This document shows, piece after piece, positions 1,130 through 54,962 of a stretch of 64,000 nt of DNA. Position numbers and translations under genes: made by a program. The stretch lies in the NCBI GenBank assembly GCA_002104945.1, contig MCFH01000002.1:992001-1056000 (forward strand), written 5' to 3'. Under the pieces are notes generated by a model. The model was not told where the DNA came from. It saw nothing but the letters and a program-made list of their open reading frames with translations, and did no database searches. Position 1 is the stretch's first letter. Each line of letters begins with the position of its first letter. The DNA is from Piromyces finnis finn (taxonomy: Eukaryota > Fungi > Neocallimastigomycota).

Positions 1130-2542
1130 ATGAATAATATTAAAAATTTGTCCAGTAAGCCAGAAAGATATAAGAGTAATAATGAAAATCTATTCTCTAA
1201 CGAAACTATTTTAACTGGAGAAGATTTTGAAATCAGTGAATCATCGATAAATCAAAAGGGTACATTAATTGAGAAAGGTTCTGGAATCAATAAACCAATG
1301 ATGAACCAAACAAATACATTAACAGAAGAAAAACATGATACTGAAGAAACTTTAAAACCGTTGATGAGCCAAACAAATACATTAACTGAAGAAAAACATG
1401 ATACAGAAGAAACTTTAAATTTAAAAAATCTAATAATTGAAGAAGAAATAGAAGATGTAAAGACCGAAACTGAAAGTTTTACCCAGGATTTAACTAGAGG
1501 AGAAAATTCAGATGATGAAAAAGATATAAAACAATGTAGTAAGGACACAAAAATTTTATGTAATGATCAAATAGACAAAAAAGAAATACAAGATGAAATA
1601 ATATATATTAAGGAAAACGAAGAAAATAAAGAACTACAAAATACTACTGTGTATATATCTTTATCTTGTTTAAAACTGAATAGATTAAATCGTGAAAATA
1701 TAGAATTTGTTTCAGAGACAAATAACAAAGTAATTGAAATTTTGAATGATGAAATTGTTAAAGTAGTATCCGGAAATAATGAATATAATAATAATAAAAA
1801 CATTTTATCTATTGAAAATGAATTCAAATATTTATATAATAAAGATAAAATATTATTATATATTTTAAATTTAAATTTAGAAAAAGATGAAGAAAGATTC
1901 AAAATTAAAGTTACATGTAATAATGAAAAAATTATTTCAAAATATAGTTTTTGTATTAAAAAATATCAACAACTTTTTATTTTTTCACCTTCTTTTAAGT
2001 TAATTAATAATAATGGTCATATAATTAAGAATAGAGAAAAAATTAAAAAATATATTTGTTCAAGGAATAATAAAAACATTGTATTTGATTTATTAAATGA
2101 AAAATATTTCTTGACAGATTTACAAAAATTTATTTTCTATAAATGTTATTTGACAAAAAATAATATAGATTATTTGTTAATTGATCTGTTAGAACAAACT
2201 AAAAAAATATTTAATAAATCAAAAAATTTATATTTAATTTTTATGTTGGAATTTATTATCGCATTAATTCAAAAAGAAGAAAACTTTGATAATCTATCTG
2301 AAAATATAAGATTAACGTTTGAAAATATTTTTATTGATTATGTAGAGAAAAAGGAAATTAAACTGCCTAAGAGATATGATAAAAATATGAAAAAGTATGA
2401 TACTGTAGTAAAAATTATTGAAAATTATAATATTTCCACTTTCAATGAAAAATCAATCATAGGATATTATCTTTTTCTATTAACATACTATCAATTTACT
2501 AAACAAGATAAATTTAATGAAATTTTTAATAAAATTCCATAA
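1130..2542 (+). CDS. N-terminal segment of the RNF213-like gene (470 aa ORF ending at a single in-frame TAA)
   Basis: Same frame as the 2573-15184 ORF. After TAA 2540-2542 the frame continues open (AAT TCT AAA TTA TCC ATC ATA AAA TAT ATT TTG...). Composition matches the downstream ORF, which lacks its own ATG (starts at TTG). Confidence 0.65.
   Translation: MNNIKNLSSKPERYKSNNENLFSNETILTGEDFEISESSINQKGTLIEKGSGINKPMMNQTNTLTEEKHDTEETLKPLMSQTNTLTEEKHDTEETLNLKNLIIEEEIEDVKTETESFTQDLTRGENSDDEKDIKQCSKDTKILCNDQIDKKEIQDEIIYIKENEENKELQNTTVYISLSCLKLNRLNRENIEFVSETNNKVIEILNDEIVKVVSGNNEYNNNKNILSIENEFKYLYNKDKILLYILNLNLEKDEERFKIKVTCNNEKIISKYSFCIKKYQQLFIFSPSFKLINNNGHIIKNREKIKKYICSRNNKNIVFDLLNEKYFLTDLQKFIFYKCYLTKNNIDYLLIDLLEQTKKIFNKSKNLYLIFMLEFIIALIQKEENFDNLSENIRLTFENIFIDYVEKKEIKLPKRYDKNMKKYDTVVKIIENYNISTFNEKSIIGYYLFLLTYYQFTKQDKFNEIFNKIP
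1292..1419 (+). repeat. 63-bp in-frame tandem duplication (2 copies)
   Basis: KP(M/L)M(N/S)QTNTLTEEKHDTEETL occurs twice; the ATG of the M(N/S)Q unit is at 1301 and 1364. Confidence 0.9.
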
Positions 2543-2572
2543 AATTCTAAATTATCCATCATAAAATATATT

Positions 2573-5500
2573 TTGAAAAAGAAAGATATTTTTAACTATT
2601 TAAAATCAGATAATTTACAATTGATATTTGAAAGAACGGATAGAACAAAAATTTCCTTCAATAACATATTAAACCTTGTATCTGATTATAATGAATATTT
2701 GAAATTATTTATTAATAACGAAGAATATATTATGAAACAAACACCAACAATAAACTATAAATATATTCCTTCACCCGATAGCTTCATTGATATTGAGTTA
2801 TTCATTAGATATTTTAAAATAATAGTAAAATTAGAAATAAATGAAGTGGATTTTAATTTTATAAAAGAAAAAATCAACATAATAATTGATATACTAAAAA
2901 ATAAAGATTATGAAAAATTAATTATATTAAAAAAATTATTTAATAATTGTGAAAATATTCCAAATAAAGTTAGAAAGTCGCTAATTGATAAAATCAACTA
3001 TTCCATACATATTACTGGAAAAGAGTTTATTCTAGAAAATAAATTAAACAATAATGATATTATAAACTTTATTATAATGGATGCACCTATATATTCAAAA
3101 GACTACAAGAATAACAAGGTGTATGCTTCTCTTATAAAATTTGTTGATATTAATAATATCGATGAAGAATTTTGTAAGAAATTTAATGATAATTCAAAGA
3201 TTTCATCATACGAAAAGATATTTGGTAAAGAAAATTATAATATTTTTCTTGATTCGTTAATTAATAATGTTAAAAGTTTTAGACATATAAATATCCTTTT
3301 TGGACTTTTCAATATGAAAGATGAACAAAATTCTAATAAGGTAGACATAGATATTATAAAAAAAATAATTAATTTAATTTCCAAAAAGGATTTAGAAAAG
3401 GATGAGATAAGTCTATCGGAATTAAAGTCAACAATATTTTTATTATATAAATTAACTTCTAAATGCAATGATAACAATTTAATTAATCAATTAATTAGAG
3501 GAACAAAAAATACCTTTAATAACAAAAATGAAATTAATGATATTTTTATATTTATTTTAAATAAATATGAGATATTAAATAGACAATTAGTTGGTAAACT
3601 GATAGAAAATATAACAGATTTTTCGAATATTGATAAGATATTTGATATTATAGATTATTTAGATAATAAAGAAATAAAATTAAAATTTATTGAAACACTA
3701 AGACATAGTATTGTAAATGAAAATGACTTTTTTGGTTTACATTTCTCGAATAATTTAAATATACTTAACCATTTAATTAAAAGAAATTATTTCAAATATA
3801 ATGATAGAAAATTTAAAAAATTGTATTATGTTAAAAGAACATATGAAATTGTTAATAACACTATCAAAAAATTAAATGATCATCAATATAAAATGGATCA
3901 AGTTAAAATAATGAAACAATTATATCAAACAAAAGTTGAAAATGAACATGGAAATAGTCTTAAAGAAAGGTTTTCTATTTTATCACTAGGTAATATTGAT
4001 ATTAATAAGACATACCAATCAACAATAGAAAAAATTAATAGTTGCTTAGAGATTTTAAATAAAATAGAAAAAATAATATCTGTTTTTAGAAACTATTATC
4101 CAAATGATAGGGGGAAAATTATAGTAACGTATGAAGGGATCAGAGAAGAAGTCATTAAAAATCCAATTCACAACTTTCCAACATTAGGAAAGTTACTTAA
4201 TTTTGAAATATTTTATACTGAAGCGCTTGAAATATCCAAGTTAATGGAATCTAAATTTTTCATTGGAATATATCAATATGAAAAGGATTCTAATTATGAA
4301 ATTTTATGTAATAATAAAGAAAAAGATAAAATTTTATTAGATCTTTCAAAAAATAGATTTAATATGTTGAAAAACATGTTCGTCGGGAAAGAAGATGAAA
4401 TAAATTTATCTTTCTTAAAAGAAATTATTTCACCAATAGCTCATAATGAAATGAAAAAAGAATTCAATTATTTGAAAAAAATATTTAATATTGATAATAA
4501 TAAAAATTCTAAAATTATATATAATAAAATAATGTTATTGAAAAATAGAGAAAAAAACATTAAAACAATTAATAATTTAATTGCCTTATTGAATCTTTTT
4601 CAATTAAATAGTAATATAATTATTAATAAACTTAATGATTATAATAAAAATATTATGAATAGCAAAACTCTAAATGATCTTTTTATTTTTGATGAAAAAA
4701 TTAAAAATTTGAAATTAGAAGTATTAAATATGAAATATACAAAAGTAATAAATAATATGTTTGAAAAGCCAGAATTAATTAATTTCATTAATAAAAATAG
4801 CACAAGTGATATTCAAATGATGGGCGAATTTATTGATGAAACAGAACATATTTTTATAACACAGTCAGATATTGATATATTGGAAGCATGTAAGGCTTTT
4901 ATAGATGAATTAAGAAATAAAAGTCTGAACTTGAATGAAAACGAATTTTTTATTGTATTTATGAATCACATAAATAATAATGAGAACTACAGTAATATTC
5001 ATGAAAAATTCCGTAATTCATATGAAAAACTAAACCATTTTTATGAACTCAATAATATATATTTAAATCCAAATGAATTAAATAAAATGCATATTAAAAA
5101 TATATATAAGAAAAGTAAATTTTATATAATTTATGATGACAAGGATGCTGAATACAAATGTACCGTTTCTTATCTCAATAATAATGATAAAGAAATAGAA
5201 AAAAATTTTGATGAAATAATGGAATTACGAGTGGTAGCATTATTAAGAAAAAAAGATCAAAAGGATAATGAATACTTTAAAATATGCTACAATTTTGCAA
5301 ATATTATCAACAATATTAAAGATATTTTAGGTTTATTAAATATTATATCAATAAAAGGATATTATGAAAGTATTAAATATGAAATAAATCTTGAAAATGG
5401 AAATGTTATTGGTTATAAAATTAGATCAAATTCAATACATAATAATTATGAAGACCAAGGAAAGGATTTAGAAGGTGTTCTAAAAGAATTACACTATATC

Positions 5501-8500
5501 AGTGATTGTCAAAATAAAGAATATATGTCAATATACTCAGATAAGCCATTTATTAGAATGATACATGGAAGACTCTTTAGTAAAATATATAATTTAATGT
5601 ATACATTAAATAAAAATTCAGAGAATGATTTAAATCCCAATTTAATTATTTCAAATGAATTGTATAATATTATAAAGTATATAATATTTAATATTTTAGA
5701 TAAAAATGAAAACATGAATATCGATAAATTAAAACTTTTGAAAATATTAATGGATGCTAGAATCGATGTTGAGTTTAATGCTGAAAATCAACTGAAGCAA
5801 ATGTTATTAGATATTAATCACTATATATACAAAATTCATAAAAATTATAATATTGGTATTGATAATATATATCAAAAATCTAAAATATTAAATAATAAAA
5901 ATAAAAAAGGTATTTATTGTCTTTTTTGTGAATTAGAAAATATTGAGAAAAATATAATATACTATTCTATAGATTTAACAAATAAACTTCCATTGGCGCA
6001 ATGTGTTTTATATTGTAATAACGAAACATCTGAAGGAGAAATAACATCTTTTATATATAATAGTGTTAAATGCAACCAAAACGCCTTATTTATTTTAATA
6101 AAACCAGAATATTTAAATATTAATCAAAAGAATGTATTAATTGAATTACTTAAGGATCTCTATGCTTCTTCGCCACAAAATATGGAATCCGTTTTACTTA
6201 TTATTTATTCAGACCAAGGGAAAACAAAGGAAATTATAATAGAAATTGAGAAATTACCATATATACAGCATTTAGTAAATGATAATGAAAATGAAAAGGA
6301 AGATGAAATTAAAAATAAAAGTAATAATAGTAATAATGGTAATAATATTATGAATGGTATTAAAAATAAATATACCAATGATAGTGATAATATACAAGAT
6401 AAAATGAATGATATTATAAAGGAAGTAGAAAACCATCTAGATATTGAAGTTTATTGTAGTGAATCTACTGGTCTAGGAAAATCATCATTAATAAAAAGTT
6501 TATTTGAAAAAGAATATCCTGATTATATTTATATTTATTTCAGAATTGGCGATGATTTTGATAAACAAAAAATCATTAAAAGATTATTAGAGTTTACCGG
6601 TAAAAAAATTGCATTGCATTTAGATATATATCCATCTAATCATATTGACCAAATGAATGAATTTTTATTTTCATTCTTAATTTTAAGATTTTACAATCAA
6701 AATGATAATATATTTTATTATGGAGATGAAATGAAAATTAAGATTGAAATTCAAAATCACTTCATTGACCTAAAAATTGTATTTCCTATATTAACGGTTT
6801 TCAAAAATGTTCATTTAGATCATAATAATAAACCATTATTAAATATTTCAAAAAATATTAATTCAGATATTCAAATCGTTTGTAATTTTTTGAAAAACAT
6901 AAAAGAAATTTCTCAAAAGAATATATATGAAATAATTCAACCATTAGATGATAGAACATGTAGAGATTTAATCAGGGAATATTTAGAAGTCCCAAATCCT
7001 AACTTTTATCAAATAGAATCTTATATCAAAATTATTGCTGAACAACTAAAACTATTTTCTAATTCAGTTTATTTAAGTATTGAATTACTAAGAGAATATG
7101 ATATGTTATATTTAAGATCTTTCTTTGTAAATGCATTGGCTACAGCCACAAAATACTTCATTACGTCTTCATATGAGCATATTTACAAAGGACAAAATAT
7201 AACTTATAATCAACAAAAAGAAAAAGTTGATTTAGAAAAAGCAAATAAAGAAGCAATAAATGCTTTATCTAAAGTGAAACCATTTTCATTTAAAAAAATC
7301 AAACCAAGTTTAATTTTAATTAATGAAGATGAACAATCACTTTCTATGATTATGACATGTAAGAAAAATACTAATGAATATAAATCTATAAATAATTTTG
7401 TAAAATTAGGATCATACTCTGAAGTATTGAATTATAATAAATTAACAACGAAAGATTTCTTAATTGAAATTAAAAAAGTTTTTAATTTATATAATTATAT
7501 TGAAGAAAACGACGGTACGGGTTCAATGGAAAAGGATGGAAAAAAATTGGAACCTTTATGTAATATTGTAAAGTCATACGTATTTACTGCTGACAACTTT
7601 ACAAAATTAATATTTATTTCGCAAAAATTAAGAAACAATATTCCAGTAATATTAATGGGTGAAACAGGATGCGGCAAAACATCATTAATAAGAATTATTG
7701 CAAAATTAAAAGGTATCACTATGTATATATTAAATATTCATGCAGGTACAGAAGAAAATGATATTATTGAATTTATTAATGATAAGGATTTATTAATAGA
7801 TTTAAATAATGAAAATAGTATAAATGAACCTATATGGGTATTTTTAGATGAAATAAATACATGTAATTTATTAGGTTTAATTTCTGAATTAATTTTGAAA
7901 CATTCCTGTAATGGTAAAAAAATAAAAAAAGAAGTGGTATTTATTGCTGCTTGTAATCCTTATAGATTAAATTCAAGTAAAAGGGAAATTGTTGGATTGT
8001 ATGATGAAAATAAAAATGTTGTAAGACAATTAGTATATAATGTTAATCCATTACCTCCTTCTCTTCTTCATTATGTAATTGATTTTAGTACACCCAGCAA
8101 AGATGATATTAGAAAATATATTTCAACTATGATTAATGAAATACTTCAAAAATTAAATTTAAAAAATTATATTTATGAAAAAATTAAAGTTATTGCCGAA
8201 GCTGCTATTTATAATGCTAATGAATTCATTAAAAATAACTATGATATTTCATCTGTAAGTTTAAGAGAAATAAGAAGGTGGGGAATTTTATTTAAATGGT
8301 TTAGTAATATTTTATTGGAGAATTCATATTTAAAAAGTAAAATAAAATTTAATGAGGAGCAAAAATACCTTTATTCTTTAAATTTAAGTATATATTTTAG
8401 TTACTATGCTAGAATATTCAACAAGGAAAAAAGAAAACTCTTCCATGATGAAATGAAAAAATCATTTGAAGAAAATTTTGATTTTGATGAATTTCCCAAA

Positions 8501-11500
8501 AGAATTCAATTATTAATTGCTAATGCTGTAGATTTAGAAAAAGGTATTGCAAAAAATAAGGCATTACTTGAAAATTTGTTTGCTATTTTTGTATGCTTAA
8601 ATACAAAAATCCCATTATTTATTATTGGTAAACCGGGTTGTAGTAAATCATTAAGTACCCAATTAATATTTAATTCTATGAGAGGACAGGAATCCTCTCA
8701 TGAATTTTTCAAAGGTTTTCCAAAAGTTTACACTAAATCTTATCAAGGTTCACCTACTAGTACTTCTAAAGGTATATTAAATATATTTAAAAAGGCAAGA
8801 GATTCTCTAAAAAACAAATCAAAAGATATAATTTCTGCTATATATTTTGATGAAATGGGTCTCGCTGAAAATTCAGAAAACAATCCATTAAAGGTTCTTC
8901 ACTCTCAATTAGAATATGATGATAATGAAAAGAAAGTTGCGTTCATTGGTATATCAAATTGGCCATTTGATGCTTCAAAAATGAATAGAGGAATTCATCT
9001 TTCAATACCTGAACCAGATAATGAAGATTTAACTGAAACAGCCTTATCTATAGCCGAATCTTACGATCCAAAATTAATATTAGACTATTCGGAATATTTT
9101 AAATATTTGTCTTATACATATTATAATTACAAAAATCTATTAAAAGAAGATCCATCTAAATTTGAAAACACAAATCCTGCCGATCAAAAAATTGAATCAT
9201 CTAAGAATAATATTAAAGAATTTCATGGAACGAGAGATTTCTATCATTTAATCAAAATTGCATCAAGATTATTAATAGAAAGTGATTTCACAAAAGATAC
9301 CCAAGAAATTGAAAGCATTTTAAATGAAAGTATTGAAAGAAATTTTGGAGGTTTAGATAATTCTGTTAAGATTTTTAAAACTTTATTAAAAGATTATTAC
9401 AGTAGTATTCAAGAACCTAAAGAATACAATGTAATGAAATGTATTATTAATAATATTCAAGATAATAATAGCAGATATCTTCTCATTGAAACTAAAAATT
9501 CTATTAATCAACTATTAATTACACTATTTCTTAATAAATTAGGAAAAAATTATGAATTTTATTATGGAAGTAAATTTGAAGAAGATGTAACTCAAGGATA
9601 TTACAGTGCAAAAGTATTGCATAAAGTTCAAGTAACAATGGAACAAGATTGTGCCATGATATTGATGTATTTAACAAGTATGTATCCATCTTTATATGAT
9701 TTATTTAATCAAAATTTCAGAAAAGAAGGTGACAGGTATGCACGAATCGCATTAGGAAACGCTAATTCACAGAACTATAAAGTACACAATAATTTTAGAT
9801 GCATTGTTCTTTTAAATCGTGATGAAATAAATGAGCAAGATCCTCCATTTATCAATAGATTTGAAAAACATATTATTATAACAGAAGATTTATTAAATGA
9901 AAAGCAAATTGATTTTTCTAAACAAATCTATTCTATATTTTCAGAATTGATTGAAGAAAATAACGAATCGGGATATCATATACAGATTAATTTTGATTTA
10001 GAAGAAATTCAAGCCATCGTTTTCCAAATTTTAATTAATAATTCAAAGCCAATAATAAAAAGAGAAAATCAATTAAATATTGAGTTAAATAACGAAGACA
10101 CTAATGTTGACGATGATATATTCGAAAAAAGTAGTAATAACAATAAAGTAATTTTAAAACTGGAAGATTTAAATAATTATGATATACTAAAAAAGAAAGT
10201 TTATAATAAAATTGTTCCTACATTATCACAGGATGTATTATTCTACTTTAAAAATTCAAATTCTGGAAGACTTAATAGAAGCGAATTTCAGACTATCTTA
10301 AATATTTATTCATCAGAAGAAAGTCAACATCAAAATATTAAGAACTACTTAAAGAATATGACTTCTAATAGACACATAATATTAACATATTCAAATATTT
10401 TAGTACCAATTTTTGAAAATGATAATGATAATGGAGGAATAACAAATAAAAAATATGGCATTTTCAATAAAAGCTCAACATTAAATGAATTTATTAGTCG
10501 TTACAATTCTGAAAGAGATATAGAAGATATAATTACTAATTATTTCACTAATGATAATTATAATTTATGTATATATCATTTCAATCAAGAAGATTGTATT
10601 CATTTAAATCATGTTAAATATTTAATAGAAAATTATGGAAATTCAATGGATAATTTAAATGAAAATAAAAACATTAAAAAATCTATAATCTTTATTATTC
10701 ATTTAAAAAGAGTAATTGATAATGAAGAGAATAAAATAAACGGTGATAATTCTAATTTAATTAGTAAGGAACACTTTATATCTCGTTTATCGGAGTGGAA
10801 ACAATTCTTTATTGATAATTTAAATGGAAAAGAAATTGATACTAGAAAAGTTTTAAATTCCACAAATTTTGAATTATTCCAAAATGAAGAATTATTTAAT
10901 ATTGATAATGAATTAGCTAATTCATTATATAATTCATTCTCTTATATTAAATATAATTATCAAATTAATTTAAGTAAAATTGAAATCAATAATCATATTA
11001 GTGAACTCTGTAAATATATCTTAAATAATAATAATTTAAAAGAAAAAATAATTAATTCGATTTACAAAAAAATTAAAAGTTATAAAGAAAATATTATTAT
11101 TTCTATATTCGAGAAATATAACTTTGAAGAAACTGATATTGACTTTATATCAATTATTATAAAATATATGAAAAGCATTTTTAAAGATAGTTTAATTAGT
11201 ACATTAATTCAATTTGAACAAAACCACATTATTTCTTCTAAAGCATCTAATTTATATGAAAATGAAATTGAATATTTTGAAACTATTTATGATAAAAAAA
11301 TTAATAGTTTTGATTCAACATTACAAAAATATTCGGGATTTTCAAGACAACAAATTAATATATATTTAGGTATTTCTTTTCCATTTATTATTCCAAAATT
11401 AAAAAATATACAAAAATACATTAAAAATAATATAATTAAAGATTATATTAAAAATGAAATTGACTATGATCCAATTAATATAGAAAAGTATAAAAATAAA

Positions 11501-14500
11501 ATGAAAATTTTTGAGAAGAATATTCATAAAGAATTTATTAATTCAAATATCATAAGTATATTCCAGGAAATAAATATTGATGGTGATATAGATATTAACA
11601 AGCTAATTAAAATATTATTTAATGATTATATTGTAATATATTTATCAAAAGACAATACTAATAGAAATAATCTAGATTGTTTAACATTTAAAAGAGAAAT
11701 TATAAATTTATTTTATAAATTATTCAATTTATATATTTTTGACGATAATGATGATATTATAATGACCTTTGAAAATTTAGAAAGATATGTTTTATTTATT
11801 GAATCATATAAAGAATATATTATAATGTTAGCTCAATTTATTTGTACTATGGATTCATATGTTCAAGACTTTTTAAATAATTATATTTCCAAAATTTCAG
11901 AAAGAATGTTTAAAATAAAGAAAGGCAAAACATCAAATATTTATAAATTATTTTTCAATTTATATGAAACTATTGTATATTGCATTCTTAATACTTATAA
12001 TGATAAAAGTATGAATGATATGTCTAATGAAAATTTCGAAGAGCTCTTGAATGAAATTAAACTTTTTTCAGATAATTTAATAAAAATTAATATAAATTTG
12101 AATTTAAATTTAAAACAATACTTATATTTATTAGATTTTATAAATATTAAGGAAACCTTTAGTAAAAACGGAATTCCACTAAAGGAGAATCTAATAAAAA
12201 TATTAAAGCTCATATATGAAGAAAATTCAATATATTTTAATGATAATTTAAAAAGTGATAATTATACTATCGAGCCCATTTCAAAAGAATTTGAATTCAT
12301 TAAAAGAAAATTAAATAATGAGGAGTTCTCAATACTAGGAGGAAAATTATTGAATAATAAAATAAGGATGTCTATAAGCGATGAATATAGAGTAAAATTA
12401 TTAAAAATTCTTTGTTCAAACAATCAAATTATAAATAAAACCAAAATATTTTTTGAACTCATTTTTAAAAATTATTGTATATGTCCAATTAATTTAATAA
12501 ATGATGCACAAAATAATAATAGTAAAGCCCAAAAGCGTTATGAAAAATATAGTAAAGATGAAGATTTAACTGAAAATAATTATAGTGATTACGAAACTAA
12601 AGACGATGAAAGTGAAAATGAAGGAACTAGTGAAAGAAGCTTTAGTGATTATGAAGTTGAAGATGAGGATGAAAGTGAAAATGAAGGAACTAGTGAAAGA
12701 ACCTTTAGTGATTATGAAGTTGAAGATGAGGATGAAAGTGGAAATGAAGAAATAAGTGAAATAAGTCTTAGTGATTATGAAGACGATGTCTATAAATATA
12801 CTGAATATGAAAATAAAAATATTATTTACGATTATACTAGTATTAGATTTTTAAATCAATTAAAACATAATGAAAGTAATAAAGTTATAATATTCTTAAA
12901 TAAAACTGAAAATAAGCATTTAGACGAAGTTTTACTGTCCTTTTATGATGGAAAAATTTCAAAATATTTTGAGGATATGAACAATAATGTTAACAATATT
13001 TTATTTAATCAATCATTACAAATATTTAAAGATACTATTATTTATATTGAAAATGAATTAAGCAAAGGAACTAGAAAGAATAAACTAGGAATACTTTATT
13101 GTATATCCTACATAAAACTATATTGCTATTATTTATGTATACTCATAAAGGATAGAGAAGATATGAAAGATTTAATTAATGATAATATACTCAAGTTTTT
13201 AAATGATACAAATAAATTTAGAAAAGTTATTAAGATATACATTCTTAAAGTATTAAATAGAATTATCTTTGATAATTATGATAAATTAATAGAATTTATA
13301 AACAAATATGAGTTGTTTATTTATGATTTCGATTTTAGTGAGAATATTAAATATTCCTTAAATTATTTATTCCTTCAAAACAACACATTTGATATCTACA
13401 AAAATATGAGAAAAATATATATGTCAAATAAAATGATACATTTTAATACACATGATGATATGCTAAACGCTATTAAAAATAATAATATCCTAAATTTCTA
13501 TGACTTGATTATTAATGAGAAAATATCAAGTCTACCCAAAAATATTAATAATATCTATGCTAGTAATTACAAAGAATTATTTAGATATACTTCAAATATT
13601 ATAAATGAAATTAGTCTACCTGAAGTTACAAAAAATATTATTTCAGTTTACCTTGATATCCATTCAATTATAGAACAAAAAGAGTTTATTCAAACAATTT
13701 CACCTTTTGAATATGAAATTCTTTTATATGCCCATAAATTTTCTTTAATTTGTTCTCTTTCAAAACCAAATACAGTATATTACAATATTTTGTCGCCGAA
13801 TATAAAAAATACTATTCAAAATATATATATTCCAGGAGGAGAACCAAAGTATAATTTATTTATAGAATCTGTTGATGAAATAAATAAATATTTTAAAAAT
13901 GGAGGAAGTGAAGAGGTTTATATGTGTAGTTGTGGTTACTGGTATAATATTAAAGACTGTGGAAGACCATGGATAACACATAAATGCCCTGTTTGTATGG
14001 AATATATAGGAGGATCAAATCATGTTCTTTTTCAAAGATCTGGTCATGTTAGAATTTGTACTAATGAAATTCACCGTATGAAATTTAGTGAAAATATTCC
14101 ATATAAAATGTTAAGCAATATAATATATGAAGCTGAAGAGCAAAAAGCAATTCAAATTATTGGATTTAAAAAAGTATTAAAAAAATACTTTTTAAGTAAA
14201 GCCAAAAAAGTTAGAAATATGAATAATATAACCTACAGAATATTAAGTTTTATATTTTACTCATGTATTTTCTATAACGAAAAAATTAAAAATATTAATT
14301 TTAATTATTTAAGTAATTTCTATTATGAAGACTCGAAAGAAGATTGTTCTATATTAAAAATATTAATTGATTCATGGAATATTTTATCTGAAGAATTATT
14401 TAAAAGAGATATTGACAATATTCAAATATTCATAAATATGATTATCCCAGATATTAGTAAATTAATTATTGAAAATAGCAATGCTATGACTGAATCAGAA

Positions 14501-15184
14501 GTAAGAAATAATTTTGAAGAATTATGTAATCAAATAATTGAAAGGGCAATTAATAATTATACTAATTATTATCCTGTCTATATTAATAATAACAAAGAAA
14601 TATTACAAATAAATGATGATACAATTAAATCTATTCTACAAGAAACCACTAACTTTAATAATTTATCAAAAGATGACTACCCATTAATTCAATATTTCTA
14701 TGCAGCCAGTTATCCATCCTATGAAGGCTTCTATAAAGAATTTTATTCATTACAAGATAATTTAAAGTATCCAGTCTTAGCAAATTATCTTAAATCCACA
14801 CAAGAAAATAGTGAAAAAATTAAATTGTTACAAAATTTCCATTTAATAAATCCTCTTATTACCTATTCATTAGAAAAGTATTCAAATAAGATTTCAAGAA
14901 AAGAAGCTAAAGAAATAATAATTAAAAATGAATTAGAAAATGATAAATATATGAAAAAATTATTTATAAACTTTAAAAAAGGATGGAAAAATATATATCA
15001 AAAACTGTCTAACTATGACTGTAGTGGAAAATTACCTGAAATGTTTATTGAAGAAAATAAATGTTTATCCTATATCTTAAATGATTATCATGAAAATAAT
15101 TATGGAAAGTACATTTCTACCGTCTATAAAGATTTTATTACATATCAAAATGAAATATACTATTTCAAGATATCTCGTAAATAG
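2573..15184 (+). CDS. RNF213 (mysterin)-like giant AAA+ ATPase / RZ-finger E3 ubiquitin ligase, main ORF (4203 aa)
   Basis: Collinear RNF213-type motifs: degenerate Walker A STGLGKS (~6464), GETGCGKT (7658-7681), WVFLDEINT, FIAACNPYR, RQLVYNVNPLPPSL, SVSLREIRR, AKNKALLENLF, PLFIIGKPGCSKS (8627-8650), YQGSPTST, YFDEMGLAENSENNPLKVLH, FIGISNWPFDASKMNRG, GTRDFYHLIK, LYDLFNQ, PPFINRFEKH. RZ finger YMCSCGYWYNIKDCGRPWITHKCPVCMEYIGGSNH at ~13918-14023. Confidence 0.92.
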   Translation: MKKKDIFNYLKSDNLQLIFERTDRTKISFNNILNLVSDYNEYLKLFINNEEYIMKQTPTINYKYIPSPDSFIDIELFIRYFKIIVKLEINEVDFNFIKEKINIIIDILKNKDYEKLIILKKLFNNCENIPNKVRKSLIDKINYSIHITGKEFILENKLNNNDIINFIIMDAPIYSKDYKNNKVYASLIKFVDINNIDEEFCKKFNDNSKISSYEKIFGKENYNIFLDSLINNVKSFRHINILFGLFNMKDEQNSNKVDIDIIKKIINLISKKDLEKDEISLSELKSTIFLLYKLTSKCNDNNLINQLIRGTKNTFNNKNEINDIFIFILNKYEILNRQLVGKLIENITDFSNIDKIFDIIDYLDNKEIKLKFIETLRHSIVNENDFFGLHFSNNLNILNHLIKRNYFKYNDRKFKKLYYVKRTYEIVNNTIKKLNDHQYKMDQVKIMKQLYQTKVENEHGNSLKERFSILSLGNIDINKTYQSTIEKINSCLEILNKIEKIISVFRNYYPNDRGKIIVTYEGIREEVIKNPIHNFPTLGKLLNFEIFYTEALEISKLMESKFFIGIYQYEKDSNYEILCNNKEKDKILLDLSKNRFNMLKNMFVGKEDEINLSFLKEIISPIAHNEMKKEFNYLKKIFNIDNNKNSKIIYNKIMLLKNREKNIKTINNLIALLNLFQLNSNIIINKLNDYNKNIMNSKTLNDLFIFDEKIKNLKLEVLNMKYTKVINNMFEKPELINFINKNSTSDIQMMGEFIDETEHIFITQSDIDILEACKAFIDELRNKSLNLNENEFFIVFMNHINNNENYSNIHEKFRNSYEKLNHFYELNNIYLNPNELNKMHIKNIYKKSKFYIIYDDKDAEYKCTVSYLNNNDKEIEKNFDEIMELRVVALLRKKDQKDNEYFKICYNFANIINNIKDILGLLNIISIKGYYESIKYEINLENGNVIGYKIRSNSIHNNYEDQGKDLEGVLKELHYISDCQNKEYMSIYSDKPFIRMIHGRLFSKIYNLMYTLNKNSENDLNPNLIISNELYNIIKYIIFNILDKNENMNIDKLKLLKILMDARIDVEFNAENQLKQMLLDINHYIYKIHKNYNIGIDNIYQKSKILNNKNKKGIYCLFCELENIEKNIIYYSIDLTNKLPLAQCVLYCNNETSEGEITSFIYNSVKCNQNALFILIKPEYLNINQKNVLIELLKDLYASSPQNMESVLLIIYSDQGKTKEIIIEIEKLPYIQHLVNDNENEKEDEIKNKSNNSNNGNNIMNGIKNKYTNDSDNIQDKMNDIIKEVENHLDIEVYCSESTGLGKSSLIKSLFEKEYPDYIYIYFRIGDDFDKQKIIKRLLEFTGKKIALHLDIYPSNHIDQMNEFLFSFLILRFYNQNDNIFYYGDEMKIKIEIQNHFIDLKIVFPILTVFKNVHLDHNNKPLLNISKNINSDIQIVCNFLKNIKEISQKNIYEIIQPLDDRTCRDLIREYLEVPNPNFYQIESYIKIIAEQLKLFSNSVYLSIELLREYDMLYLRSFFVNALATATKYFITSSYEHIYKGQNITYNQQKEKVDLEKANKEAINALSKVKPFSFKKIKPSLILINEDEQSLSMIMTCKKNTNEYKSINNFVKLGSYSEVLNYNKLTTKDFLIEIKKVFNLYNYIEENDGTGSMEKDGKKLEPLCNIVKSYVFTADNFTKLIFISQKLRNNIPVILMGETGCGKTSLIRIIAKLKGITMYILNIHAGTEENDIIEFINDKDLLIDLNNENSINEPIWVFLDEINTCNLLGLISELILKHSCNGKKIKKEVVFIAACNPYRLNSSKREIVGLYDENKNVVRQLVYNVNPLPPSLLHYVIDFSTPSKDDIRKYISTMINEILQKLNLKNYIYEKIKVIAEAAIYNANEFIKNNYDISSVSLREIRRWGILFKWFSNILLENSYLKSKIKFNEEQKYLYSLNLSIYFSYYARIFNKEKRKLFHDEMKKSFEENFDFDEFPKRIQLLIANAVDLEKGIAKNKALLENLFAIFVCLNTKIPLFIIGKPGCSKSLSTQLIFNSMRGQESSHEFFKGFPKVYTKSYQGSPTSTSKGILNIFKKARDSLKNKSKDIISAIYFDEMGLAENSENNPLKVLHSQLEYDDNEKKVAFIGISNWPFDASKMNRGIHLSIPEPDNEDLTETALSIAESYDPKLILDYSEYFKYLSYTYYNYKNLLKEDPSKFENTNPADQKIESSKNNIKEFHGTRDFYHLIKIASRLLIESDFTKDTQEIESILNESIERNFGGLDNSVKIFKTLLKDYYSSIQEPKEYNVMKCIINNIQDNNSRYLLIETKNSINQLLITLFLNKLGKNYEFYYGSKFEEDVTQGYYSAKVLHKVQVTMEQDCAMILMYLTSMYPSLYDLFNQNFRKEGDRYARIALGNANSQNYKVHNNFRCIVLLNRDEINEQDPPFINRFEKHIIITEDLLNEKQIDFSKQIYSIFSELIEENNESGYHIQINFDLEEIQAIVFQILINNSKPIIKRENQLNIELNNEDTNVDDDIFEKSSNNNKVILKLEDLNNYDILKKKVYNKIVPTLSQDVLFYFKNSNSGRLNRSEFQTILNIYSSEESQHQNIKNYLKNMTSNRHIILTYSNILVPIFENDNDNGGITNKKYGIFNKSSTLNEFISRYNSERDIEDIITNYFTNDNYNLCIYHFNQEDCIHLNHVKYLIENYGNSMDNLNENKNIKKSIIFIIHLKRVIDNEENKINGDNSNLISKEHFISRLSEWKQFFIDNLNGKEIDTRKVLNSTNFELFQNEELFNIDNELANSLYNSFSYIKYNYQINLSKIEINNHISELCKYILNNNNLKEKIINSIYKKIKSYKENIIISIFEKYNFEETDIDFISIIIKYMKSIFKDSLISTLIQFEQNHIISSKASNLYENEIEYFETIYDKKINSFDSTLQKYSGFSRQQINIYLGISFPFIIPKLKNIQKYIKNNIIKDYIKNEIDYDPINIEKYKNKMKIFEKNIHKEFINSNIISIFQEINIDGDIDINKLIKILFNDYIVIYLSKDNTNRNNLDCLTFKREIINLFYKLFNLYIFDDNDDIIMTFENLERYVLFIESYKEYIIMLAQFICTMDSYVQDFLNNYISKISERMFKIKKGKTSNIYKLFFNLYETIVYCILNTYNDKSMNDMSNENFEELLNEIKLFSDNLIKININLNLNLKQYLYLLDFINIKETFSKNGIPLKENLIKILKLIYEENSIYFNDNLKSDNYTIEPISKEFEFIKRKLNNEEFSILGGKLLNNKIRMSISDEYRVKLLKILCSNNQIINKTKIFFELIFKNYCICPINLINDAQNNNSKAQKRYEKYSKDEDLTENNYSDYETKDDESENEGTSERSFSDYEVEDEDESENEGTSERTFSDYEVEDEDESGNEEISEISLSDYEDDVYKYTEYENKNIIYDYTSIRFLNQLKHNESNKVIIFLNKTENKHLDEVLLSFYDGKISKYFEDMNNNVNNILFNQSLQIFKDTIIYIENELSKGTRKNKLGILYCISYIKLYCYYLCILIKDREDMKDLINDNILKFLNDTNKFRKVIKIYILKVLNRIIFDNYDKLIEFINKYELFIYDFDFSENIKYSLNYLFLQNNTFDIYKNMRKIYMSNKMIHFNTHDDMLNAIKNNNILNFYDLIINEKISSLPKNINNIYASNYKELFRYTSNIINEISLPEVTKNIISVYLDIHSIIEQKEFIQTISPFEYEILLYAHKFSLICSLSKPNTVYYNILSPNIKNTIQNIYIPGGEPKYNLFIESVDEINKYFKNGGSEEVYMCSCGYWYNIKDCGRPWITHKCPVCMEYIGGSNHVLFQRSGHVRICTNEIHRMKFSENIPYKMLSNIIYEAEEQKAIQIIGFKKVLKKYFLSKAKKVRNMNNITYRILSFIFYSCIFYNEKIKNINFNYLSNFYYEDSKEDCSILKILIDSWNILSEELFKRDIDNIQIFINMIIPDISKLIIENSNAMTESEVRNNFEELCNQIIERAINNYTNYYPVYINNNKEILQINDDTIKSILQETTNFNNLSKDDYPLIQYFYAASYPSYEGFYKEFYSLQDNLKYPVLANYLKSTQENSEKIKLLQNFHLINPLITYSLEKYSNKISRKEAKEIIIKNELENDKYMKKLFINFKKGWKNIYQKLSNYDCSGKLPEMFIEENKCLSYILNDYHENNYGKYISTVYKDFITYQNEIYYFKISRK
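12584..12784 (+). repeat. Acidic in-frame tandem repeat (SDYE...E-rich; units of 60, 63, 63 bp)
   Basis: AGTGATTA(C/T)GAA starts at 12584, 12644, 12707 and 12770. Translated unit is roughly SDYEVEDEDESENEGTSERSF. Confidence 0.9.
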
Positions 15185-15467
15185 TATATTTAATCATTAT
15201 GACTGGAATATATTTGATTTTTTGGATAAAGACTACAGACCAGAATTATGGAACAAAAGTATAATTTCAGAAGACTATGAAACTTTATTTAATGAAGAAT
15301 TCAATGAATTAAAAAATATAAATATAAAAATTGGGCAATCCCTTCAATTTTATAAAAATTTAAGTGTGGAGAAAAAAACAAAAGATAAACAATCTTCTAA
15401 ATCAAATAATAACAAAATAAAGAATTCAACAAAGGTAAAGAAACCCAAAAGGTTTTTGGATTATTAA
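15157..15467 (+). CDS. Frame-shifted C-terminal segment of the RNF213-like gene
   Basis: A different frame overlapping the end of the main ORF reads TISRYLVNS...ELWNKSII...FNEEFNELKNINIKIGQSLQFYKNL. This resembles the extreme C-terminal helical segment of RNF213-like proteins (recalled, not aligned). Confidence 0.6.
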
Positions 15468-23680: not shown

Positions 23681-25646
23681 TTAATGATTAAACTCTGTCA
23701 TTTGCATAGCATCTCCGGGATGTAAACGATAATCTCTATTATTCCATTTATATTTGAGATAATCAATACCTTTATATAAAATTATTAATAATAATTTAAA
23801 TTAATTTGTCTCTTTACTTGTTTATATATTATACACATTAAATACATTATAAACTTGTCATAGTATATTACCTTTCTTAAACATCTTCTTTTCCATCATA
23901 ATATATACGGGTATACCTGTAATGACAAATAATATACCTAATATAGATTCTACAGTAGCATCCATAAAACTAAAGAAAACTAAAAAGATTACAACACAAA
24001 CAAAAATTAATGGAGTTGTAAACCATACACGATATGGTCTATCCATATGTGGTTGTGTAAATCTTAAAATAATAAGACCCAAGACACAAAGACCATAGAA
24101 AATCCATGTTGATGTTGAATATAAATTTACTAATGTATTGTAGGAACCAGTAATTACATAGAAAATTGAAAAGAAAGTTTGTAAAATAATTCCATTTATA
24201 GGGGTTTCAAAACGTGAGGATATTTTTGAGAAGGTTCTTGGTAATTGACCTTGAGATGCTGTTACTTGAATTAACCTTGATCCAGTATACATTGAAGCAT
24301 TGGCAGCACCGAATGTACTTAATATAACTGTTGATATAAGAAGACGGCCTATAAATGGACCAAAAAGTGTTCTTCCAAAATCCTATTATTGTTTTTACAG
24401 TTAAAATTGTTATAAATGATGATAATTGTTGTAAATATTTTCATTCATATTTAATTAAAATGATTATTATTGTAGTAGTAAATAATGTAAATGCACATAA
24501 TAATAAATAATATATAATATAATAATAGTTAATTTAATTAGTGCTCATTATTAAAAAAAATTCAATATATTGAATACATACTAATACAATAGTTTTTGAA
24601 GTTTTTGCAACTTCTGCACTAAGAACTGCATAATAGGCTATATTAGCAATAAGATAGGATAAAATAACTGAAAAACAACCAATTTTTAATGCTTTTGGTA
24701 AATTTCTTTTTGGATTTTTAAGTTCCCCAGTAACTAAATTTAAATTATTCCTATCATATAATAATAGTAAATAATAAATGTTAATTTATTATTTATAATC
24801 CATTTATATTTGTGATGATTCTACTTACCATCCATCATATGCCCATAATGCTGAATATAAAGCTAAGGCATAGCTTCCTGGATTTTTTGAAGAGCCCTTA
24901 AATATATCGTTAAAATTATCTGTCATTGGTCCAGTAAGTAAGACACCGAATCCAAGAATTCCTATTACAGCTAATGCTACTAATTTTAACATGGTAAATA
25001 TATTTTGAATCCATCTACTCAATTTTGAGCTTATGCAATTTATGAAGGTTAGAATAATTAAGCAAAGAACGGCAACAAGTTTAGACGTAAAATCACTCAC
25101 TTCTTTATCATTATATATTAATTTACAAAAATAATCAGCAAATACTACACAAATAATCGAAAGTGAGCCTGGTTTTTGAACTAATATTGCAGTCCAACTA
25201 AACAAAAATGAAATCAATTTACCATATGCCAAAGCTAAATATGGGTGTTCACCACCAGATGCTGGTATCATAGTACCTAATTCTGCATAACATAAAGCAC
25301 CAGTTAAGGCTAAAAGACCAGCTAAAAGCCATATTAATAAAGATGCCCCAATACTTCCTGAAAATTGTAATACCGGTCCTGGAGAAGCAAAAATACCACT
25401 ACCAATCATTAAACCTATTATAAGACTTACACCTTGGAATAAAGTAACGTGACGTTCAACTTCTTGATTTGATTGTTTAACTTGTGAAAGTGATAAAGGT
25501 ATACTATGAATTTCAAAATCAAATCCATTATAAAAACTATCATCATCATTTTCATCATTTAGTACGTTATTCAATAAACCTATTTCATCATCATCTTGAC
25601 CGTTATAAAAGTTTTGACTACTATATATTTCATCTGATGAACTCAT
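23681..25646 (-). CDS. APC-superfamily L-type amino acid transporter (SLC7/LAT, MUP1-like permease), 4 exons
   Basis: Motifs GVSLIIGLMIGSGIFASPG, GALCYAELGTMIPASGGEHPYL, ALYSALWAYDGW, RPYRVW. Exons 25646-24829, 24750-24582, 24382-23872 and 23769-23681; the last exon reads GIDYLKYKWNNRDYRLHPGDAMQMTEFNH*. Confidence 0.93.
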
Positions 25647-49974: not shown

Positions 49975-52900
49975 ATGGCAAAGAGAAAGTCACAGGTTTA
50001 TAATTATATATATATATATATAATTGATAAAAATAATTTTTTCTTTAATATCAATGGAAATATTAATTTAAATGTGAATGATATATATTATATACAAATA
50101 AATAGAATAATTCTAAACATGATACAAAAAGAGTTAAATTTGAAGATGAAAATATTGAAAATGAAGAAGTAGAAGAAACTTTTGAAGGTATATTTTAAAT
50201 GCAAAATCTTTAATTAAAATATAAAATATAATTTAAATTTCCCAATTTAAAATTAGGAATTTTAAAATTTTTATTCGAAATAATATCAATTCTTATATTT
50301 ATAAAACAATTTAATTTAATATGTGAATGATAATATAAATGAAATTTGAATATTAAATATACGTGTATTTCAAATCTAAAGATTTTGAAGATATAGAAGA
50401 TGAAGATAAAATAGAAGAAATTGAAGAAGAAGAAGATGAAGAAGATGATGATGAAGACGAAGACGATGAAGACGATGAAGACGAAGATGAAGATGAAGAA
50501 ATGGACAATGAAGGTGTTCCTGTAGAAAGAAAGAAATCAAAATCATTATCAGATAATTCAAAATATTATAAAGCTCCAACAAATGAAGAAATTCAACAAC
50601 TTCGTGAAACAACAGAATTATTCAATACAAATATATTTAGACTTCAAGTAATTATTGAAATAAAAAATTTTTTTATATTGTTTATGAATTTTTCTATTTT
50701 AAAGTAATTTCATGTAAAAATTATTTCATTAATTTCTATTCATTTTTATAAATCCAATTAAATTTCAAAATCATTAAAGATTGATGAATTATTATCTGAA
50801 GTTAAAATAGGCCCAAAGAAGACAGTTGTTTTAGAAAAAGCTTTACACAAGTTAAAGAATATTTTAGATAACATGAAATCAATTCCAGAAAAAAGTGTAA
50901 GTTTCGAGTTTTTTAAATTTTTTACTCGTATAAGAACATTTCTTTTTAAATTAAAATACATTATATTTTAAATATGTTGTTGTAGTTATCTGAAATTCAA
51001 AAATTAATGAAAAAGAAAAATATAAAAATTCCATTCCCTAATACTCCACCAAAAGATATTCAATATAAATTTTCTTTCAAAGCACCATCATCCGTAAATT
51101 TAGTTGGTTCATATTTACTTCAAACTGCATGTAAAAGCCCAACTATAAATAATATTGATTTAGCTGTCGAAATGCCAAAAGTAAATATTTTACAATAACA
51201 ATTGAATTATTGATGAATTAATAAAATAATAACATTGATAAATTATTTGTAATATTAATTTTAATATATTATATAATTTTTTAAAAAGGAATTATTTCAA
51301 GAAAAAGACCATATGAACTATCGTTACTTTTATAAGCGTGCTTATTATTTAGCCAATATTGCTGCTAATATTCAAGATCATAAAAAAGATTTTAAAGTTA
51401 AAATGGAATTTGATTTATTCCAAGATGATCAAAGGCAACCAGTTCTTGTATTGTATGGTGCTGGTGGTAATTATTGCATTTATTATTTTTGAATTTTTTT
51501 AATTTTATATTGACTCTTTATAATAATATTTAAAATATATTTTATTTTAAAAAATTACATTGATTAAATATTTATTCAAATATCTAAATTATAACATATA
51601 TATATTTCTTTTATATTTATTTATTATCCCTAATTATATAAAATTATTACAATATTTTGGTAAATTTGCAATGAATTATGATAAATTATAAATATAAATA
51701 TTAAATTAATGTAAAATGTGATGGCTTTAAAATCATCTTTACAATATAGATGGTTCAGAATTTGATTTCTCAAAATCATCATTTTGTATTCGTATATTAC
51801 CATCAATATCACCATCTGTTTTCCCAATTCAAAGATTAGCACCAACCAGAAATAATGTTAGACCAACAGTTGAAATGAAAACATTACCACCAACTCCATT
51901 ATATAATAATATAATTTTAACTGAAACAGCCTATGTTTCTCATTTAAACACTTTACATAGATATGTTAAATCAAGTACTTCATTTAAGGATGCTTGTATA
52001 TTGGCTAAAGTATGGTTAAATCAAAGAGATTTTAATAGTAAAAATGGTAGATTAAATGGATTTATTTTTGCTATGATAATGGCTTGGTTAATGAAGTGTG
52101 GTGGTCCAGATGGTAGTAGAAAATTAGGTGTTAGTTACAGTTCTTTCCAACTTTTCAAAATCACCATGGAATTTATTGCTAATCATGATTTTGTTAATAA
52201 ACCAATTATTATGACTGATAATCAAGAACCAATTTCACCAGAATTCACTACTGATTCATATTCAAGTACTAATGAAATTGTAATTATTGATATGACTGGA
52301 AGAGTTAATCTTGCTGCCAATATCACAAAATTTTCAATGCTTGAAGTTCAAAATGAAGCCAAGTTAACTATTCAAAATTTAACCGGTGAAGATTCAGCAG
52401 ATAAATTTGATACCCTTTTCTTACAAAAAATTAACTCATCCTTGAAGTATGATAATATTTTACGTATACCACCATTGTCTGTACCAGCTCCATTATATAC
52501 TGTTTCTGCTTCATTAGATAATCCATCTGCTTGTTTACATTTAAAGCGTAAGCTTCCAAATTTATTATCTAAGGCTTTAACTGATCGTATTATTCATATT
52601 TGTTCTTTCAATCCTGTATTACCAAAAGGTCAATATTCAATTAATAATTGGAAGATTAATGAAAAAATGCCAGAAAATAATAGTGTTATAATGATTGGTA
52701 TTAATCTTGAAGCTAACCAATCTACTAGACTTGTCGATTTTGGTCCAAGTGCTGAAGATGAAGTAGCTTCTAAAGCATTCAGAGAACTTTGGGGTGAAAA
52801 GTCTGAACTTCGTAGATTTAAGGATGGAAGTATTAAGGAAAGTGTTGTTTGGGATCTTAATCCAAATAATAATGAAAATGTCGAACGTTCCTTAATTTTA

Positions 52901-54962
52901 TCTAAAATGATTTCATTTATTCTTGAAAGACATATTGGTATTAAAACTATTTCAAGTATTCGTGATGATGAAGAAACTGATCAATCAGAAGGTAAATAAT
53001 ATATAAGATTTGATTTGAATTATTTTAATTTAATAATTTTAATATATTAAATAAATAATAATGAATTACCTCTTTATATATATATAATAATAATAGAAAC
53101 TTATGCCCATTTATTCTCTACTCAATTAAATTCATTTTTAATTCCATTTGATTCTGAATCTAGTTACACCTTTAAGGATGCTATGAATGCTTTCCATGAA
53201 TTTTCAAGAACATTACAAGGTTTAGATTCATTACCATTAGATATTGTATCTGTTCAAGCTTGTGATCCAGCATTACGTTATACTTCTGTTTTTGAACCAC
53301 AACCAATAAAAAATTCACCAGCAATTGAAATTATTATTACATTTGAACAAACTACTCGTTGGCCAGATGATTTAAAGGCTATCCAAATTATGAAATCTGC
53401 TTTCCTTATTGAACTTTCAAAGGTTTTATTAAAGAAAGAAATAATTAAGGATGCTATTATTAATGTTGGTAATAGTCAACATAAAATCGAAGCTGTAGGC
53501 TATGTTGATTTTGTTTTAGAAAGTGGATACACTTTCCGTTGTAGAATTCATCAAGAACGTGAAGAAGTTCTTTTAAAACGTATTACAGACTCCAATGCTC
53601 CACAAGCTATTGCAAAATCAAATGAATATCAAGAATGTGTTCGTGCACTTACAATTATAGATCATCATTTCAATCATGGTCCAATCCTTTCTGTTAAGAT
53701 TCAAAACCTTTGTTTGAAATTCCCATCTCTTTCCTACACCATTAGATTAGTAAAGCGTTGGCTTGCTGCTCACTTATTTAGTAAATATCATATTTCCGAT
53801 TCTATTATCGAATTAATTTGTGCTAAGGTTTACACAAATCCAAATCCATGGGATATCCCAAATAGTGGATGGGCTGGTTTCATTCATGTACTTTATCTTT
53901 TTGCTAATTGGAACTGGTCAGAAGAACCATTAATTGTTCCAATTGAATTAGAATCATTAGAACCAGGAGCTGAAGCTAAACAAACTCAAAATGAATTATT
54001 ATATGGTGAAAAGAAATGCTTTAATAGAGCTGAACTTTATCAACGTTCAAGACAAGCTTTACTTGAAATGAGAGAAGCTAAATCCAATTCAGCTATAAAA
54101 ATGAGCAAAAAGGATAAAAAGACTGTTAATACAACATCCCCAAGTATTCCACTTGTAATTGCTACTGAACTTGATCCAGAAGGCAATTATTGGACTGGTA
54201 AATCCCAAGATAGACCAACAAAAATGGTTATGAAGCGTCTTAAGTATCTTAGTCAAGCTGCTTTAACTGAAATTGAAAATATTATTTTAAAGGGTCACGA
54301 TTCAGATTTAAAGAAATTATTTGTCACACCAAAGAATAACTTTGATGTTATAATTAAATTAGATACATCAAAAATCATTAACTATAAAGAAAATCTTTAT
54401 TACGATGCTGATCACAAAGATTCCAAGAAAATAAAATACAAGAACTTAGAAATTGATCAAGAAGAAAATTATGAATTTGATCAATTTAATCCAATGGATT
54501 ATTATTTATATAATCTAAAGGTAAATTAAAAATAAATAAATGAATAAATTATTATTATTTGGATAATATTATTTCAGAAAACTAATAATTTTAATTTTTA
54601 TAAAAAAAAAAAAAAAAAAAAAAAATAGAAAACATATGGTAATATTGCTTACTTCTTCTATGATCAATATGGTGGTGACAGTATTTATGTTTTATGGAAT
54701 AGAAAAGCATTTGGTGATGTTCCACAAAATTGGAAGATTAACCTTAAATATTCTACTATGCCAATAAGCAAGGTTAGTTTAATTTTGAATATTTCATTTA
54801 AAAATTATTATATATAAAAAAAAATCATTTTATTAATTAAATTACTATTTCTTTTTATAGGATTCTGAAGATGTTAAACCAAATACCAATGCTATTTTAG
54901 GTGAAATGCAAAGACTTGGACAAGGATTTGTTAAGGGCTTTGTTATTAATAGAGAAATTTAA
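49975..54962 (+). CDS. UTP22: U3 snoRNA-associated protein 22 / nucleolar protein 6 (Nrap family), ~10 exons
   Basis: Nrap motifs APTNEEIQQLRETTELFNTNIFRLQ, VNLVGSYLL, IDLAVEMP, KDHMNYRYFYKRAYYLA, PTPLYNNIIL, FKDACILAKVWLNQR, LVDFGPSAED…FRELWGEKSELRRFKDGSIKESVVW, TIRLVKRWLAAH. Stop TAA at 54960-54962. Confidence 0.95.

Follow-up and report, generated by a model that had tools for sequence, protein, structure and literature searches.

RNF213 (mysterin), represented by human and mouse chains in the Protein Data Bank (PDB; 6TAX, 8S24, 9JW1, 9JWG), has two active ATPase sites, AAA3 and AAA4, which are needed for pathogen coating (PMC11549300). In the human protein the AAA3 residues K2426 and E2488 are required for coat formation, and the AAA4 counterparts of these Walker A and Walker B residues are K2775 and E2845 (PMC11549300). 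Roles have also been assigned to residues of the RZ finger (a nucleophilic cysteine, a general-base histidine and zinc ligands), and the RING domain is dispensable for ubiquitylation of lipopolysaccharide and of pathogens (PMC11549300). Here we describe an RNF213-like locus of 14.3 kb from the anaerobic gut fungus Piromyces finnis, lying within a 64,000-nucleotide stretch of contig MCFH01000002.1 (assembly GCA_002104945.1, positions 992,001 to 1,056,000), hereafter the window. The locus has the domain order and the catalytic motifs of RNF213, lacks a RING, and in the assembly carries two lesions in its reading frame. It is one paralogue of a RING-less RNF213-like family of Neocallimastigomycota, and we consider it likely that the sequenced strain carries it as a young pseudogene or as a null or truncated allele.

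An RNF213-type ATPase core and RZ finger

An earlier note, made from the DNA letters, had proposed a locus of more than 4,600 codons carrying RNF213-type AAA motifs in the right order. The present analysis bears this out: approximately 4,780 codons on the forward strand (window 1130–15467) are colinear with RNF213, from a P-loop that precedes AAA3, through AAA3-AAA4 and the AAA region that follows, and on through the ubiquitin ligase (E3) shell, the RZ finger and the C-terminal domain (Table 1). The gene lies in three open reading frame (ORF) pieces, which were searched separately in all searches and joined with X at the breaks only for alignments and trees. When five homologues are aligned by tblastn, their match to the N-terminal piece begins at ~1616 and one continuous frame runs from ~1631 to 15151. 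Across the DNA of the main ORF (ORF2) the other two forward frames hold 96 and 189 stops per 1,000 codons, a density which argues that ORF2 is real, selected coding sequence.

A phmmer search against all PDB sequences aligned 783 residues of the ATPase core with human and mouse RNF213 (E = 3.9e-96), corresponding to human residues ~2391–3188, with the human numbering anchored on K2426 and C4505. At E ≤ 0.01 the RNF213 chains of human and mouse were the sole matches and no dynein or midasin chain was found, so that the core is not closer to either of those proteins among solved structures. A profile built from 21 family members matched RNF213 with E = 6.7e-175 and extended the alignment to human ~3424, and Pfam assigns the AAA, AAA_5 and AAA_7 models to ORF2 residues 1661–1798. 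Both Walker A/B pairs, described as intact in the earlier note, align residue for residue with the human AAA3 and AAA4 motifs. The stretch with the upstream P-loop matches human ~1855–2094 weakly but colinearly (independent E = 6e-4 with the family profile), and colinearity with the RNF213 AAA region therefore comprises this weaker stretch and human 2390–3424.

Evidence from fold comparison places the C-terminal part of ORF2 in the same family. An AlphaFold2 model of its last 782 residues has a mean predicted local distance difference test score (pLDDT) of 83.6. In a Foldseek search with this model RNF213 accounts for each of the top nine entries (best E = 2.7e-7), another family first appears at E = 0.3, and dynein entries appear at E above 3. 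Alignment with VIA-align places 590 residues on the human RNF213 E3 module (9JWG, human 4141–4902; Z = 20.3, root-mean-square deviation 17.2), and the next entry after RNF213 scores Z = 5.9. Together with the PDB sequence and profile matches, this fold match substantiates assignment to the RNF213-like AAA+/RZ-finger E3 ligase family. A family profile of the C-terminal 780 residues finds the RZ finger of RNF213 with E = 7e-7, and the C-terminal domain weakly but colinearly.

The C-terminal RZ finger that the earlier note had recognized is matched by Pfam and modelled with high confidence, which argues that the Cys/His cluster does adopt the RZ fold. In alignment with human C4505...H4537, residues C3785, C3787, C3805 and C3808 form a putative zinc site, and both catalytic residues of RNF213 are conserved, with C3796 at the position of the nucleophile (human C4516) and H3817 at that of the general base (human H4537). 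Three of the human zinc ligands are kept. The position of the RNF213 ligand H4509, which is variable across the family, is occupied by tyrosine in this copy; instead, the fungal family has an additional cysteine two residues after the first (CxC), which is invariant in the family, including all 120 relatives checked.

In contrast to RNF213, the fungal gene has no RING, and an acidic repeat linker lies roughly where the RING of RNF213 would be. No C3HC4-type Cys/His pattern was found in ORF2, in the 120 relatives, or in the two unrelated window proteins in the set, and Pfam detects no RING in the locus. Cysteine and histidine residues upstream of the E3 shell are too sparse for such a domain (only three cysteines in ORF2 residues 3201–3420), and the first residue of the E3 model, which aligns to human 4141, is already downstream of the human RING. 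At the other end of the protein, Pfam and the PDB sequences give no match beyond the family for the first ~1,700 residues: no sequence match to the RNF213 N-terminus is detectable, and Pfam finds neither CBM20 nor any other domain in ORF1 or the first 1,600 residues of ORF2, nor is there a PDB sequence match there. This N-terminal arm is the fastest-evolving part of the protein in the fungal family, which is a likeness to primate RNF213, where positive selection is concentrated in the N-terminus (PMC11549300).

By homology with RNF213, an intact member of the family would be an ATP-gated, RZ-finger transthiolating ubiquitin ligase. Such a giant protein would have a dynein-like AAA+ core, with ATP bound and hydrolysed at AAA3 and AAA4, followed by a C-terminal E3 module whose RZ finger would accept ubiquitin from an E2 onto the cysteine equivalent to C3796; the ubiquitin would then be handed on with the help of the histidine equivalent to H3817, a RING not being needed.

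Two lesions and the fate of this copy

The family and motifs of the giant ligase gene proposed in the earlier note stand, but the locus is not one open gene. The first lesion is an in-frame TAA at codon 471, where homologues have a conserved leucine (FNKIP*NSK at the locus, FN(Q/K)IPLK in homologues), presumably through a single base change from TTA to TAA. An intron across the TAA was considered and rejected; the 60 nt that precede it contain no GT donor, and the alignment of homologues continues through the site without a gap.

The second lesion is a deletion near the 3′ end. In the five homologues 256–275 residues separate the motifs “DFITYQNE” and “ISRYL”, and among 69 homologues this spacing is 196–298 residues (median 271), whereas at the locus it is ~0, unique among the set, with the two motifs abutting in different frames. 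The lost segment was found nowhere else in the window, which rules out its relocation there. Translation across the junction reaches a TAG nine codons on, while the tail remnant in the next frame is still open and is 40–47% identical to the tails of homologues (tblastn). In the model of an intact homologue (P0001:4240-4998; pLDDT 80.4) the segment lost at the locus is folded (pLDDT ~85), and the beginning of this segment falls in the region matching the human C-terminal domain (4578–4979, Z = 13.6); the deletion cuts this domain of the present copy at about human 4900. Interrupted by both a nonsense codon and a frame-shifting deletion, the gene as assembled cannot encode the full-length protein.

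The remainder of the locus shows little sign of decay. Of the possible single-base changes in the ORF, 6.4% would create a stop, and a single stop is seen in 14.3 kb, from which we estimate well under ~0.5% neutral divergence since constraint was lost. Deviations unique to the window copy occur at 19 of 465 otherwise family-invariant columns (4.1%), and the same measure is 0.4–6.3% in those intact paralogues that have no close partner in the set. Identity by domain (36–43% in the N-terminal arm, 67–71% in AAA3-AAA4 and 47–61% in the E3 part) follows the same gradient as in intact pairs, and the terminal branch of the window copy is not unusually long. Since the rest of the locus looks selected, the lesions are either very recent or errors of assembly. 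Three readings follow: very recent disabling of the copy, faults in the assembly, or continued use of a shortened product.

We favour the first of these, in which a paralogue of the RING-less family would have taken two hits, the change of leucine codon 471 to TAA and the loss of ~0.78 kb from the C-terminal domain with a frameshift. Several points weigh against this reading. The lesions could stem from a wrong base call or from collapse of the assembly, and an exact-pattern scan spanning the stop site, in which the variable base was set to N, found no independent copy in the Joint Genome Institute (JGI) metagenome contigs. The perfectly open 4,203-codon ORF is also compatible with a shortened product that remains in use, and the catalytic function that the lesions would abolish is attributed to fungal members through their homology with RNF213.

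Use of a shortened protein, read from an internal ATG (the first at 2732) to the TAG at 15182 and belonging to a repertoire of truncated family members, appears unlikely to us. The product would retain the ATPase core and the RZ finger and lack ~520 N-terminal and the last ~360 residues; the openness of the 4,203 codons, the integrity of both Walker pairs and of the catalytic Cys and His, and the many shorter relatives in databases all agree with it. However, many of the short database entries are contig fragments, the stop precedes the first in-frame ATG by 190 nt and falls within a region that is translated in homologues, and the frameshift interrupts a folded domain where trimming would be expected at a domain border. 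Moreover, the conservation that persists in the out-of-frame tail points to a recent accident, not to an old, selected architecture.

It is quite unlikely, in our judgement, that the organism carries an intact gene and that long-read assembly errors, or variants that arose somatically or in culture, account for the TAA and the deletion in the sequenced DNA. The absence of any decay in the remainder of the locus would be expected in that case, and public annotation of these giant genes is unreliable in this genome, where the locus is split into a 470-residue and a partial 2,070-residue model. Errors in long-read consensus sequences are mostly short insertions or deletions in homopolymers. The TAA, by contrast, is a clean T/A substitution outside a homopolymer, the second lesion is a clean loss of ~780 bp between two conserved motifs, and two independent artefacts in one gene are improbable. 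That the locus encodes a dynein-, midasin- or ZNFX1-type protein with a chance Cys/His cluster is refuted by the PDB sequence search, the fold search, the structure alignment and the family profile: AAA_5 and AAA_7 are “dynein-related” Pfam models and ZNFX1 has an RZ finger of the type found here (PMC11549300), but only RNF213 chains match at E ≤ 0.01, the fold search returns RNF213 only, and the superfamily 1 helicase core and NFX1-type fingers of ZNFX1 were not detected by Pfam, which finds only AAA-type and RZ domains at the locus.

Relatives in gut fungi and the rumen

A word search for relatives returned 2,325 sequences of comparable length and 982 shorter ones (proteins of 1,138–7,355 residues), of which all that carry an organism name are from Neocallimastigomycota, with the exception of one mollusc protein at 36% identity. 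The family itself is not new, as the earlier note had conceded; UniRef names relatives “RZ-type domain-containing protein”. Such proteins of Neocallimastigomycota (for example P. finnis BCR36DRAFT_318513, Piromyces sp. E2 PIROE2DRAFT_13322 and Neocallimastix homologues) have the same full-length architecture, with 46–50% overall and 66–69% core identity to the window copy. Their gene models are open and encode 4,700–5,400 residues, whereas the window copy has a nonsense codon and lacks a C-terminal segment of ~270 residues. The best core identity among the proteins returned is 67–69% and no near-identical intact twin was found among them, which indicates that the copy has no recent intact twin. 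Compared with RNF213, the fungal gene is intronless and multi-copy, and the window copy is broken. One intact P. finnis paralogue is found on contig MCFH01000005.1 of the same assembly.

RNF213-like proteins from rumen metagenomes (ENA; more than 2,000 entries, 40–49% core identity) share the length, the RING-less layout and the CxC RZ finger of the fungal proteins. Unlike the fungal genome, however, they are encoded on compact or gene-sized AT-rich contigs, and none of the 78 matches to a neighbouring Sec6 gene is a named gut-fungal sequence; the rumen relatives probably come from rumen ciliates. Two of the rumen scaffolds (L003 and L004) are ~15 kb long, several relatives occupy scaffolds that consist of a single 14.8-kb gene with flanks of 60–240 bp, and contigs of 2.6–2.9 kb carry Sec6 homologues from organisms of this kind. 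These sizes suggest gene-sized chromosomes; the ends of the contigs of rumen relatives showed no telomere repeats.

In a FastTree phylogeny rooted on a single long-branch mollusc outgroup, the window copy falls within the fungal clade, beside a group of Neocallimastix and metagenome sequences, and the fungal clade nests within the rumen-metagenome sequences. The mollusc protein (P0337, Potamilus streckersoni) is an AAA+ protein of 2,662 residues with 36% identity to the AAA3-AAA4 core of the window copy; its bit score of 568 is similar to those of the more distant rumen-metagenome relatives listed around it, and the rumen relatives are not dramatically closer to the fungal genes than some animal genes. 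An Atlas look-up of the AAA core returned look-alikes labelled Rotifera, Foraminifera and Mollusca, which indicates that the broader family is widespread in eukaryotes. In the collection of papers searched, none linked RNF213 with Neocallimastigomycota or ciliates.

The many divergent paralogues, the fast-evolving N-terminal arm and the freshly broken copy are together reminiscent of genes in conflict. An immune-effector role for the locus or for the family, which the earlier note had suggested, is purely conjectural. Going further, birth-and-death evolution of the immune or conflict type could be envisaged, of which the fresh loss of a gene in a large, quickly diverging family with a variable N-terminus would be a trace, with the gut-fungal proteins acting as a RING-less, all-cysteine-RZ form of cell-autonomous defence, possibly acquired from rumen protists in view of the nesting in the tree, and the window copy being a shortened variant in use or a polymorphic null allele; we regard this scenario as rather unlikely.

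Surroundings of the gene and meaning of the family

The coordinates of the features discussed are collected in Table 1.

Table 1. Features of the RNF213-like locus in window coordinates
Feature	Position	Strand	Description
ORF1 piece	1130–2542	+	470 codons, then TAA; N-terminal part of the gene (codons 1–470)
63-nt coding tandem repeat, Thr/Glu-rich product	1292–1419	+	2.0 copies (Tandem Repeats Finder, TRF)
In-frame TAA nonsense codon	2540–2542	+	Codon 471; conserved Leu in homologues
Main body of gene, up to deletion junction	2543–15154	+	Open, in frame with the N-terminal piece
ORF2, main body	2573–15184	+	ORF of 4,203 codons, same frame as ORF1 piece
Upstream AAA-type P-loop SESTGLGKSS	6458–6487	+	Before AAA3; family profile aligns it to an RNF213 P-loop
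AAA3-AAA4 ATPase core	7571–9919	+	ORF2 residues 1667–2449; phmmer, family profile, Pfam
AAA3 Walker A GETGCGKT	7658–7681	+	Aligned to human GETGCGKT
AAA3 Walker B FLDEIN	7841–7858	+	Aligned to human FFDEAN
AAA4 Walker A GKPGCSKS	8627–8650	+	Aligned to human GKPGSSKS
AAA4 Walker B YFDEMG	8843–8860	+	Aligned to human VLDEVG
63-nt coding tandem repeat, acidic Ser/Glu/Asp-rich product	12605–12782	+	2.8 copies (TRF); just upstream of E3 shell; linker roughly at the place of the RNF213 RING
E3 shell, RZ finger, first part of C-terminal domain	12836–15181	+	ORF2 residues 3422–4203 (782 residues)
RZ finger	13898–14035	+	Pfam ZnF_RZ-type PF20173, ORF2 residues 3776–3821, E 5.8e-11
Third ORF piece	15081–15467	+	Next frame
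Deletion junction, frame shifted	~15150–15160	+	~0.78 kb (~260–270 codons) lost
C-terminal tail remnant	15153–15467	+	Next frame, ~105 codons, still open
Premature TAG	15182–15184	+	Reached 9 codons past deletion junction

The window is extremely AT-rich (G+C 12–29%). Its RNF213-like gene has no introns over 14.3 kb, and the neighbouring genes are ordinary, intron-containing housekeeping genes, encoding an amino-acid permease, a SAP-domain protein, Nrap/UTP22 and a Gryzun/TRAPPC11-like protein; those for the permease (23858–25646, reverse strand) and Nrap/UTP22 (51875–54529, forward strand) are each divided by introns into two ORFs. The two in-frame 63-nt tandem repeats of the RNF213-like gene have 92% matches and low-complexity products. 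Approximately 330 bp upstream of its ATG lies a 157-bp element (642–798) that is bounded by 31-nt inverted repeats (90% complementary), contains CTGGCTAAA repeats in its interior and resembles a miniature inverted-repeat element; the window holds no second copy of it.

In the public annotation of the assembly the locus is divided into a 470-residue model and a partial 2,070-residue model (window 4655–10863). The product of 1130–2539 is annotated as a separate protein of 470 residues, with an exact match in NCBI/UniRef. The 2,070-residue model begins and ends within the open 4,203-codon ORF, and it is missing from the word-search matches, where a 100% match would be expected. The public annotation is wrong at this locus in presenting a 470-residue “gene” and a partial model.

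Because it is broken, this copy is unsuitable as a “complete machine” for expression or assays. If its lesions are real in the organism, as we consider likely, the locus documents a very recent gene loss in the family. More broadly, gut fungi possess many copies of a RING-less relative of RNF213 in which the catalytic residues of the ATPase sites and of the RZ finger are intact, and the gut-fungal family may thus serve as a natural test of the RZ/AAA machine without a RING and outside animals.

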